Positions 13,201 to 16,146 of a stretch of 64,000 nt of DNA are shown here, one piece after another. The notes below the pieces were generated by a model that saw nothing but the letters and a program-made list of their open reading frames with translations, was not told the DNA's origin and did not search any database. A program made the translations under genes and the position numbers. Source of the stretch: Entomortierella parvispora E1425 (Eukaryota > Fungi > Mortierellomycota); assembly GCA_020891255.1 (NCBI GenBank), contig BQFW01000002.1, positions 3,038,001 through 3,102,000 of the forward strand, read 5' to 3'. Within the stretch, counting starts at the first letter, position 1. Every line of letters begins with the position of its first letter.

Positions 13201-14034
13201 GAATGGGAGGGGATGAAAAAAAAAGGAAGGAAAGAGGCAGAGAATCTACGGCGCGGACTATTCCGCGCCATTGGACACATGTCGGTGGAGAAGAGATTGT
13301 AGGACCTAGACACAAACTCGGAAGACGCTCGTAAGAGGCAGTCAAGCCCGTAAAGCATCGCGCGCTAGATCGTCCATTCTTTCTTTTTTTTTCCTTTCTT
13401 CGCCTCTAATGGTACCCTTTTGCTACTCGTGAAAATCCCTCACGTCTGCTGCCCCTCACCCTCATCCGTTTGGTTACAACTTTTATGCCTCAATTGATAT
13501 TTGATTTCATGCAGGCCAGAGAATTCCCATAGTTGATTTAACGAGGGGGCGCAGAGCAGGAACTGGTGTTCAATTGGAGATATGAACAGAACTAAGCCAG
13601 AGACCATTCCATTGGAATACAATGGAGCAACAAAAAGAGATTAGAAAAGCGCTCAAGCAACATAAGAAAAACAAAAATAATTTACCCCGGGTTCTCTTGG
13701 CAACATGGGACGCTGTGAGTGGGTCCTGGGTCCAAGATCTGGATCCAGAGGGTGGAACCCGCAAATCAGCGTGCACGAGATGCGTCAAATTGAAGACAGC
13801 TACAGGAGCAAGAGAGACGCTCAGGCCAGGACTGCCCGATCCGATTTGCCAAGGGGAGCAAGAAGAGAAAAGGTCAAAGAAGGGCAAGTAAAAATAGATC
13901 CCACACGACTGGCACCAATGACGCCCGCCATTTGTCACCCGCACGGAAACATGGCCGCAGCCATCGTGCGCGAATTCCAGCTCAGCGGCTAAAAAAATTG
14001 ATCTTTGTCAAAATTGCCGCATTCCCTGCCACCA

Positions 14035-14041
14035 TATAAAA
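14035..14041 (+). promoter_or_regulatory. Candidate TATA box of the ODC gene
   Basis: TATAAAA about 600 nt upstream of the ODC ATG, followed by a pyrimidine-rich stretch. Confidence 0.5.
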
Positions 14042-14331
14042 GGAGGGACGAGCCCGTTCCTGCTTCCCTCATTCCCACCATCACTTCTTTGTTCATCATC
14101 CCCAACATCCACCAACTCAACAAGCCAAGTCCACTCAAGCTCACTTACCCAGCTCTCCTCGATACATCCCTCCTCCCCTTTACAAGAACCTCGATATCCC
14201 ATTTAGGACAGCAGCCACTTCTCGCTTTCTTTCACCGTTCGACTCTCACTCTTCCTCCACTTCTCCCTGAAAAGAGACCCCGGGCTTCCACCCATTTCCC
14301 ATCTTGGCAGGCCGTTTTCCTTCGGTTTGCT

Positions 14332-14421
14332 ATTAACATCACGGCGCTAAACAACACCTCAAAGTCAGCGAATCTTCGGCGATCGCCTCCTTGGCTTCCC
14401 GAATCCCAAGGACTCGTCTGA
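14332..14421 (+). promoter_or_regulatory. Non-AUG uORF (uCC-like, PPW motif) in the ODC 5' leader
   Basis: In-frame ATT (14332) or ACG (14341; A at -3, G at +4) start. Peptide (I)NITALNNTSKSANLRRSPPWLPESQGLV*, with PPW at 14386-14394 and stop at 14419-14421. No ATG occurs between the TATA box and the ODC start. Confidence 0.75.
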
Positions 14422-14641
14422 TTCTGCAGAATCGCCCACCGCCCTTTCAACATTATATTTTCTTGGCAAAGGCCTTGACCTTTTCGCCTTTCAGCGCTTT
14501 TTTTAATCGCCTTTCTCGGCTAAACCACGCTCAGTTTCCGCAGCAAGCAAAGCAATCACTGAAGCAGCAGTAGCAGTAGCAGCAATAGCACTGTCTTTCG
14601 CCCCCCAGACAATCTCTACCGATAACTCCTCGACTATCACA

Positions 14642-16146
14642 ATGATCGACATCTCTTTCCAGCAGGATCAGTACGACATCGTGCCCACTTTGGTGCAGTC
14701 CCCTTTGATCGAGACCCTCAAGGCCCGCGCGAAGGCTGAGATGGCTCGTGGCAACTCTGCTACCGCTTTCCCCAAGGTCCATGAGTTGCCCATTGACCAC
14801 ATGTTCCACGCACGTCTCGCCTCGTTCGATCCCGAGAGCGAGGACGCAGAGGCTGAGAATGCCTTTTATGTGGCCGACCTCGGTGAGGTCTACCGCCAGC
14901 ACCAGAGATGGAAGGCTCTTCTCCCTCGTATTGAGCCATTCTTTGGTAAGACATTCGGAAAACGACAACTCGATGACGTTCCATGAACTTTTTTGATTTT
15001 AGCATCCTGGACTTTGGTGCTAACCGTATCAATGACGTTTTGTTCTGGTGGTTTCTAGCTATGAAGTGCAACCCCGATCCCATGGTGATGCGCCTTTTGG
15101 CCTCTCTCGGCACCGGATTTGATTGTGCTTCCAAGAACGAGATCCAGTCTGTGCTGGACATGGGTGTGGACCCTTCCCGTATCATCTATGCCAACCCTTG
15201 CAAGCAAAACTCGTTTGTGAAGTATGCTTACCAGAACAAGGTCCGCATGATGACCTTTGATAACGCGGAAGAGCTTTACAAGATCAAGAAGTTCCACCCC
15301 GAGGCTCAGTTGGTCCTCCGTATCCTGACCGATGACTCCAAGTCGTTGTGCAAGCTCGGACTGAAGTTTGGAGCGCCCTTGGACACTACTGGATCGTTGT
15401 TGGAGACCGCTCAGGCATTGGGACTGGATGTGATCGGGATCAGCTTCCACGTGGGCAGTGGATGCTTTGACGCCAACGCTTTCGGTGAGGCTGTCATTCG
15501 CGCTCGTCGCGTCTTTGACCAGGCCAAGAGCTACGGATTCGATTTCAAGTTCTTGGACGTTGGTGGCGGATTCCCTTCGGCTCATGTGACCGAGGGTATC
15601 ACCTTTGAGAAGGTGGCTTCGATCTTGGGATCCACCGTCGATGCTCTCTTTGAGCCCGATGTGCGTGTGATTGCTGAGCCTGGTCGTTACTATGTCGGTT
15701 CGGCCTTCACCTTGGCCACCCAGGTGATTGCCCGCCGCACCATTCAGCGTGATTTGACCGAGGAGATCCTTGCTCAGGAGAACCAGAACCCCTCCCACAT
15801 GTACTACATTAACGATGGCATGTACGGATCGTTCAACTGCATCATGTTTGATCACCAGATCTGCGAACCCAAGGTCCTTCTTAAGGACGGCGAGTTTGCC
15901 TACAAGGATTCGTCGCTCAGTGTCAACAACGAGCCCCTTGGTATCGCCTCAGTCTGGGGACCTACCTGCGACAGCATTGATTGCATCTCTGCCAAGGCGG
16001 CTTTGCCCCTGATGGAGACTGGAGACTGGCTCTACTTTGACAACATGGGCGCCTACACCATCACGGCCGCCAGCCAGTTCAACGGTTTCCGCAAGAGTGA
16101 GATCCTCTACACCACCACTGAACCCGAGGTCTCGTTCCACTTTTAA
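14642..16146 (+). CDS. SPE1: Ornithine decarboxylase
   Basis: PLP-lysine motif PFF-AMKCN across intron 14946-15058. Also FDCASKNEI, SFHVGSG, LDVGGGFP, AEPGRYY, WGPTCDSID and MGAYT. Confidence 0.97.

Follow-up and report, generated by a model that had tools for sequence, protein, structure and literature searches.

Upstream conserved coding regions (uCCs) are found in the mRNAs of ornithine decarboxylase (ODC) homologues of animals, Pezizomycotina, Basidiomycota, and Zygomycota, where they combine non-AUG starts (AUU, ACG, and UUG) with adjacent prolines near the C terminus of the encoded peptide (PMC2811004). The "Zygomycota" ODC uCCs were published by Ivanov, Loughran, and Atkins in 2008, according to a review (PMC2811004). 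They can be as short as 22 codons, ACG is among the putative uCC starts, and the animal and zygomycete uCCs are regarded as independent in origin (PMC2811004). Repression by the uCC of AZIN1 is boosted by spermidine and depends on the peptide sequence (PMC2811004). As three later papers summarize the AZIN1 mechanism shown by Ivanov et al. in 2018, high polyamine levels interfere with eIF5A and ribosomes stall at Pro-Pro-Trp (PPW); a queue of scanning ribosomes then extends back to the weak start, the uCC is initiated more often, and the main open reading frame (ORF) is translated less (PMC9082881, PMC11058473, PMC10855120).

A frame of this kind precedes the ODC gene of Entomortierella parvispora in a 64-kb stretch of genomic DNA (the window), in which all features described below lie on the + strand. 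An earlier note, made from the sequence alone, had described a frame with PPW whose stop codon lies 220 nt before the ODC AUG, and this is what the sequence contains. The C-terminal end of the frame reads RRSPPWLPESQGLV, followed by the stop codon TGA at 14419-14421, and exactly 220 nt (14422-14641) separate this stop from the ODC AUG at 14642. Two near-cognate codons, ATT at 14332-14334 and ACG at 14341-14343, lie in frame with the PPW codons CCT CCT TGG at 14386-14394, the inferred ribosome stall site. Counted from the ACG, the uCC (14341-14421) has 26 sense codons, TALNNTSKSANLRRSPPWLPESQGLV, and counted from the ATT it has 29. The frame is unmarked in genome annotations.

The identity of the downstream gene as ODC is firm. 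The gene occupies 14642-16146 and consists of exon 1 (14642-14945), a single GT..AG intron (14946-15058), and exon 2 (15059-16146, stop codon included); a cDNA contig from a close relative (L014) joins position 14945 to 15058/15059. The exons, which were searched and translated one by one rather than as a joined sequence, sum to 463 codons, the length of the annotated E. parvispora ODC. The Pfam domains Orn_Arg_deC_N (1.4e-76) and Orn_DAP_Arg_deC (1.5e-25) were matched, and the product of exon 2 is 100% identical to the annotated 463-amino-acid protein.

The frame resembles the Zygomycota ODC uCCs, as far as the review summarizes them (PMC2811004), in its location in the ODC 5' leader, the lack of an AUG, a putative ACG-type start in good context, its very short length, the adjacent prolines, and conservation toward the C terminus. 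In addition, the frames of Mucor, Rhizopus, and Phycomyces are clearly orthologous to it. With the mammalian AZIN1 uCC it shares a near-cognate start, PPW near the end, a position upstream of an ODC-family main ORF, and, by analogy, the proposed logic in which a stall leads to a queue and the queue to more uCC initiation. The two differ in that the AZIN1 start is AUU, lies ~30 codons upstream of PPW, and opens a peptide ending in PPWxxPS, whereas the fungal frame starts at ACG, 15 to 19 codons upstream of PPW, and ends in PPWLPESQGLV. Of the marks of an animal-type uCC, the terminal PPWxxPS is absent from the window frame, and the ATT that would correspond to the AUU start is not conserved. 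This ending and the unconserved ATT therefore assign the E. parvispora frame, on sequence grounds, to the Zygomycota group of ODC uCCs and not to the animal group. The AdoMetDC upstream ORFs (uORFs) of plants and animals are likewise short, peptide-dependent, and located in the mRNA of a polyamine biosynthesis enzyme, where they act as polyamine sensors, but they start at AUG, encode other peptides, precede another gene, and stall ribosomes at or near termination (PMC2811004). Among the animal and fungal uCCs compared here, function has been demonstrated for AZIN1 only, and the fungal frame is known from sequence. We consider it likely that the E. parvispora ODC leader contains a translated uCC, orthologous to the Zygomycota ODC uCC, which exerts stall-and-queue control. 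Translation, stalling, dependence on polyamines and eIF5A, and a role of the hairpin described below are what we infer, the sensing of polyamines and eIF5A by analogy with mammalian AZIN1.

The nearest ATG upstream of the ODC start codon lies at 13951 and is followed by an AUG-free stretch (13954-14641) that is probably a long 5' leader; the 691 nt before the ODC AUG contain 0 ATG, in frame with the uCC or otherwise, compared with 6.5 expected from composition. AUG-free stretches of 437 to 919 nt precede the ODC AUG in 10/10 genomic loci, where 4 to 9 ATG are expected, and this fits long leaders that are scanned without interruption by an AUG. An upstream ATG near the uCC occurs solely in the leader of Lobosporangium transversale (L005:2064-2130); the resulting uORF of ~21 codons runs through the upstream motif described below and the hairpin and ends at a TAG just before AAC ATC ACG.

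In relatives, transcript-derived sequences place the uCC within the ODC mRNA, which for E. parvispora is consistent though indirect evidence. Contig L014 (SRR10953326), from a close relative with 92% ODC identity, is spliced; it lacks the ODC intron and is therefore transcript-derived. Its leader of 312 nt is devoid of ATG, and both the hairpin and the uCC are present. Two Mucor contigs (L015 and L016) lack the 57-nt ODC intron seen in the genomic locus L008, and their uCCs lie in AUG-free leaders of 571 and 576 nt. The earlier note had named a transcription start downstream of the uCC as an observation that would tell against its proposal; the uCC is instead inside the spliced ODC mRNA of both a close relative and Mucor. 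The L014 contig begins exactly at the hairpin, just after the motif CCCCGGGCTTCCACCCATTTCCC, and transcription may start near 14306, which would still keep the uCC within the mRNA. A TATA-like box (TATAAA, 14035-14040), a putative core promoter, lies 306 nt upstream of the ACG, and a TATA-like box is also present 289 to 419 nt upstream of the ACG in four other loci (L003, L005, L006, and L007).

The window contains a single copy of the motif CCCCGGGCTTCCACCCATTTCCC (14279-14301), ~5 nt before the hairpin. In the alignments it is conserved in all Mortierellaceae and restricted to them, with the block present in L001, L002, L003, L005, L006, L007, L018, and L019 and absent from the Mucorales. 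The motif is non-coding, because it is shifted in frame relative to the uCC in M. alpina and separated from it by an in-frame TGA in A. wolfii; the upstream block "PRASTHFP" was rejected as part of the uCC frame on the same two observations. Pairing of the motif with the PPW region was also rejected, as the two form a direct repeat rather than complementary sequences (by eye) and no helix is predicted between them. Because the L014 cDNA begins just after it, the motif could be a core-promoter or start-site element or an RNA element of the leader.

ODC loci for comparison were obtained by exact protein look-up and by an ODC-based metagenome scan that was blind to the leader, and the conservation set comprised the ODC leaders of nine Mortierellaceae, Mucor, Rhizopus, and Phycomyces, plus Gigaspora. 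The frame was found in every fetched Mucoromycota ODC leader having enough upstream DNA, including every Mortierellaceae ODC locus fetched. Conservation of the PPW frame in Mortierellaceae and Mucorales, with divergence that is mostly synonymous, bears out the check proposed in the earlier note. The peptide read from the ACG is TALNN(T/N)SKSANLRRSPPWLPESQGLV (26 sense codons) in the window and the L014 cDNA, and it follows the pattern TAL..(LF)RRxPPWLPExQGLV (26 to 27 codons) in E. beljakovae, M. alpina, A. wolfii, Lobosporangium, Linnemannia, Podila, and the metagenome loci L017-L020 and L046. The Mucorales frames are shorter, with 22 codons each: TAxETRLVDSLFDRRGFPPWLS in Mucor and Rhizopus and, counted from the ACG, TSSEKRLLNSLFNRRGFPPWHA in Phycomyces. 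Mortierellaceae thus have 8 residues after PPW (LPExQGLV) and Mucorales 2. Peptide conservation is concentrated near the C terminus, around RRxPPW with its two adjacent prolines, and PPW is present in 15/16 leaders, the sole exception being a Podila locus (L007) with PLW. The leader outside the uCC block is unalignable between genera, while ATC ACG, the position of the stop codon, and PPW stay conserved. Between the window and L014, the uCC block is 96% identical in nucleotide sequence, compared with 86-87% for the ODC coding sequence, and blastn found no match between the two over the remaining leader, including the poorly conserved AUG-free spacer of 220 nt (14422-14641).

Several local features accompany this pattern. 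E. parvispora and its L014 relative have in common a 3-nt deletion (window 14374-14379) that removes the conserved Phe codon of LFRR, which accounts for their 26 codons instead of 27 and sets them apart from the Zygomycota uCC. Inspection by eye showed a small inverted repeat, GGGAAG..CUUCC, between the uCC and the ODC AUG in several Mortierellaceae (L001, L002, L005, and L007; alignment A1, columns ~550-590), with no obvious equivalent in the window. Two metagenome contigs with ODC-like products at 58% and 33% identity carry short upstream frames ending in DPPWNQ (L022:38-55) and APPWDQGPPF (L040:1235-1264), which may be uCCs of other lineages. Many genomes have two ODC genes, and the Mortierellaceae relationships form an open polytomy in the ODC paralogue tree.

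Selection acts at the peptide level in the uCC frame. When ten Mortierellaceae sequences are compared over their 13 final sense codons, the uCC frame has a pN/pS of 0.26, and the other two frames have values of 2.75 and 1.80. The invariant tail residues Gly, Leu, and Val are encoded by 3, 4, and 2 different codons, respectively, and the Leu by both CTN and TTG. Insertions and deletions within the frame are multiples of three, which those in the loop of the upstream hairpin are not, and the position of the stop codon is fixed across leaders.

The same peptide-level selection would be expected if a conserved uORF peptide repressed ODC while sensing a signal other than polyamines, such as general eIF5A/hypusine status or proline supply, or while acting constitutively, for example by triggering mRNA decay; the selection observed has in itself no tie to polyamines. 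The Podila verticillata copy with PLW (L007:2136-2219, protein P0046; CCT to CTT) is relevant to this alternative. It retains hairpin, ACG, frame, and tail. Retention of the frame thus does not strictly depend on PPW, and the remainder of the peptide, in particular the invariant GLV tail beyond PPW, is suggested to matter. Stalling at this copy may be weakened or altered; P. verticillata also has a second ODC gene (P0025). Against a non-polyamine or constitutive role stand the nature of the host gene, which encodes the rate-limiting polyamine enzyme, the polyamine responsiveness of the same motif class in AZIN1, and the presence of independent uORF sensors in most mRNAs of the polyamine pathway (PMC2811004). 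We therefore regard such a role as unlikely and retain the polyamine-responsive uCC as the preferred reading.

The earlier note had proposed ATT or ACG as the start of the frame, and the comparison upholds the ACG but not the ATT. No Mortierellaceae or Mucorales leader departs from ATC ACG, which Gigaspora has as well; the ACG has A at -3, and G at +4 everywhere but in Phycomyces (T). A start at the ATT has in its favor that ATT is the verified start of mammalian AZIN1 and that the codon is found in E. parvispora, E. beljakovae, M. alpina, Podila, and the metagenome locus L018. The position is nevertheless TTT in A. wolfii, GTT in Lobosporangium, and ATC in Linnemannia, and ATT 14332 was rejected as a conserved start on account of this variation; in addition, pairing in the hairpin extends as far as the first base of this codon. 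In Phycomyces, a TAG two codons upstream of ATC closes the frame, so initiation there must occur at or after CCC-ATC-ACG. The likely uCC start is ACG 14341, given the invariance of ATC ACG, the variable position of ATT within the hairpin stem, and the count of 22 codons from the ACG in Phycomyces, the length quoted for the Zygomycota uCC (PMC2811004). Initiation at ATT 14332 instead of the ACG is distinctly improbable, and the adjacent ATC may serve as a minor start or co-start.

Directly upstream of the ACG, an RNA hairpin is predicted at 14305-14332, with a core 8-bp stem (14307-14314 with 14323-14330), a loop at 14315-14322, and 10 nt between the stem and the ACG (-14.3 kcal/mol, z -2.7). 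A hairpin is predicted at this place in 10/10 species folded (-9.9 to -18.9 kcal/mol; z -1.4 to -3.7), and in all three subphyla 9 to 12 nt separate its 3' edge from the ACG. The arms are conserved, and the loops vary in sequence and length. The Mucorales stem, CGGACUG/CAGUCCG, differs in sequence from that of the Mortierellaceae yet aligns with it in register; two pairs are changed on both sides, and other changes convert GU to AU or GC. When 14 distinct sequences are aligned to a model, 92% of cells pair, compared with 17 to 52% when the 3' partner is slid, and three pairs show double changes; these counts represent few independent events in an alignment fitted to the model and lend support without amounting to proof. 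In a search of ~205 kb, a covariance model of the hairpin together with the start region matched nothing but ODC leaders of Mortierellaceae and Mucorales at E <= 1e-6, with scores that are partly due to the invariant ATCACGGC. The only other match at E <= 0.02 was the Gigaspora locus L013 (E = 0.015), and the ODC-like metagenome loci at 33 to 60% identity gave no match at E <= 1. A search of 13950-14700 against Rfam likewise returned no family match at E <= 1. On the folding and covariance models, the hairpin is a structurally conserved element. It is the part of the system that may be new, being absent from Rfam and from the literature examined, which comprised a 2010 review and later summaries of the primary papers.

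Structure can assist the selection of a start codon, as in the Kozak-type arrangement in which a hairpin lies downstream of a weak start. Stem-loop-induced ribosome queuing has also been described for ATF4 (PMC11058473). The fungal hairpin resembles these cases in its fixed short distance from a weak start, which presumably alters the dwell time of scanning ribosomes. Unlike the Kozak-type hairpin, it precedes the start (3' edge at -9 to -12) and therefore could not form a forward roadblock for a complex positioned on the ACG.

The conserved hairpin raises the question of whether the leader is a purely RNA-level element, composed of the upstream motif, the hairpin, and a second hairpin predicted within the frame, that regulates scanning or binds a factor while the frame is incidental. 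The first Pro codon and its neighbors are more conserved in nucleotide sequence than synonymous drift would lead one to expect, so some RNA-level constraint overlaps the coding constraint here. The predictions also include a second helix, in which UUCGG pairs with CCGAA around PPW (window 14374-14405; alignment A4, columns 127-155); it has one double change, G-C to C-G, in the metagenome locus L019 and may explain the extra conservation of these codons. The nucleotide identity of the uCC block, which exceeds that of the ODC coding sequence, points in the same direction. The low pN/pS is nevertheless confined to the uCC frame, codons turn over synonymously at invariant residues, indels keep the frame, the stop position is invariant, and Mucorales and Mortierellaceae have the peptide pattern LF.RR..PPW in common despite wide nucleotide divergence. 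These observations make a purely RNA-level element very improbable. A chance open frame in the C/T-rich leader, where 138 codons from 14005 onward are open in this frame with no AUG among them and long open frames arise by composition, is effectively refuted by conservation across three subphyla with a signature of coding selection and by the pattern ATCACGGC-N36-50-CCNCCNTGG, which occurs once in the 64-kb window and in 0 of 100 shuffles.

The third subphylum is represented by Gigaspora margarita (L013:1843-2470), where the uCC appears to be split by a putative leader intron of ~500 nt (GT 1925, AG 2428). The first piece, from ACG 1874 to CAG 1924, encodes TALQKQAVKLIVFRGHQ and is followed by GTAAAG; the second, after TTGCAG, spans 2429-2470 and encodes RSPPWQSCSLGIP followed by the stop codon, which lies 30 nt before the annotated ODC AUG. 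The splice was deduced only from the GT..AG boundaries and frame continuity, and the two pieces were translated separately. In the putative spliced form, the frame opens with TAL and continues to RSPPW plus 8 residues. A hairpin precedes ATC ACG by 9 nt; its 9-bp stem is of unrelated sequence, and its loop is UUCG. Provided that the splice is correct, both uCC and hairpin would be older than the divergence of Glomeromycotina, Mortierellomycotina, and Mucoromycotina. The long tail after PPW, which the earlier note had taken for a possible lineage variant, is not peculiar to the Mortierellaceae, as Gigaspora also has 8 residues; the 2-residue tail of the Mucorales may therefore be derived, and the 8-residue tail would be ancestral if the Gigaspora splice is right.

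These features suggest the following course of events for the polyamine-responsive uCC. Scanning ribosomes would mostly leak past ACG 14341, a weak start in good context, and translate ODC, and the few that initiate at the ACG would produce a 26-residue peptide. When polyamines are high and eIF5A action becomes limiting, the latter ribosomes would stall at Pro-Pro-Trp, 48 nt after the ACG, and trailing ribosomes would queue behind them, with approximately the third particle held near the ACG. The queue would increase initiation at the uCC and reduce the number of ribosomes reaching the ODC AUG 220 nt downstream. With a 40S subunit positioned on the ACG, the hairpin would have its 3' edge about where the mRNA emerges from the subunit, and there the refolded stem might act as a backstop, limiting backward movement of the queued complex, or as a pacing element for arrival at the ACG.

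The spacing of the elements is consistent with this scheme. From the ACG to the second Pro codon there are 48 nt in the window, 51 nt in most Mortierellaceae, and 54 nt in the Mucorales, and 60 nt in the putative spliced frame of Gigaspora, while 8, 8, 2, and 8 residues, respectively, follow PPW. A ribosome covers ~28 to 30 nt of mRNA. A start-to-stall distance of 48 to 60 nt thus corresponds to ~two footprints, which would place approximately a third queued particle near the ACG. It is the start-to-PPW spacing that stays constant and not the length of the tail, a pattern in the compared sequences that fits a queue of fixed length.

More tentatively, and with somewhat more doubt than confidence, the leader may hold an undescribed composite switch of RNA and peptide, made up of a hairpin 9 to 12 nt before the ACG and PPW 48 to 60 nt after it. 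The hairpin would cage the queued complex between the queue ahead and the refolded stem behind, or would itself respond to polyamines, and the unit would be older than the split of the three subphyla and would have survived the Gigaspora intron. The stem sequences of the hairpin differ between Mortierellomycotina, Mucoromycotina, and Glomeromycotina.

The kind of element described here is already known, and our analysis extends the ODC/AZIN1 uCC, a textbook example of translational control by a metabolite, to the Mortierellomycotina and probably to the Glomeromycotina, with the start pinned to an invariant ACG. The distance of ~50 nt from start to stall and the hairpin at the exit position of the 40S subunit would make this leader a minimal natural system for the ribosome-queuing model, for which Mucor lusitanicus and Mortierella alpina offer genetically tractable hosts. 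In oleaginous Mortierella strains, the expression of ODC may depend on the uCC frame.
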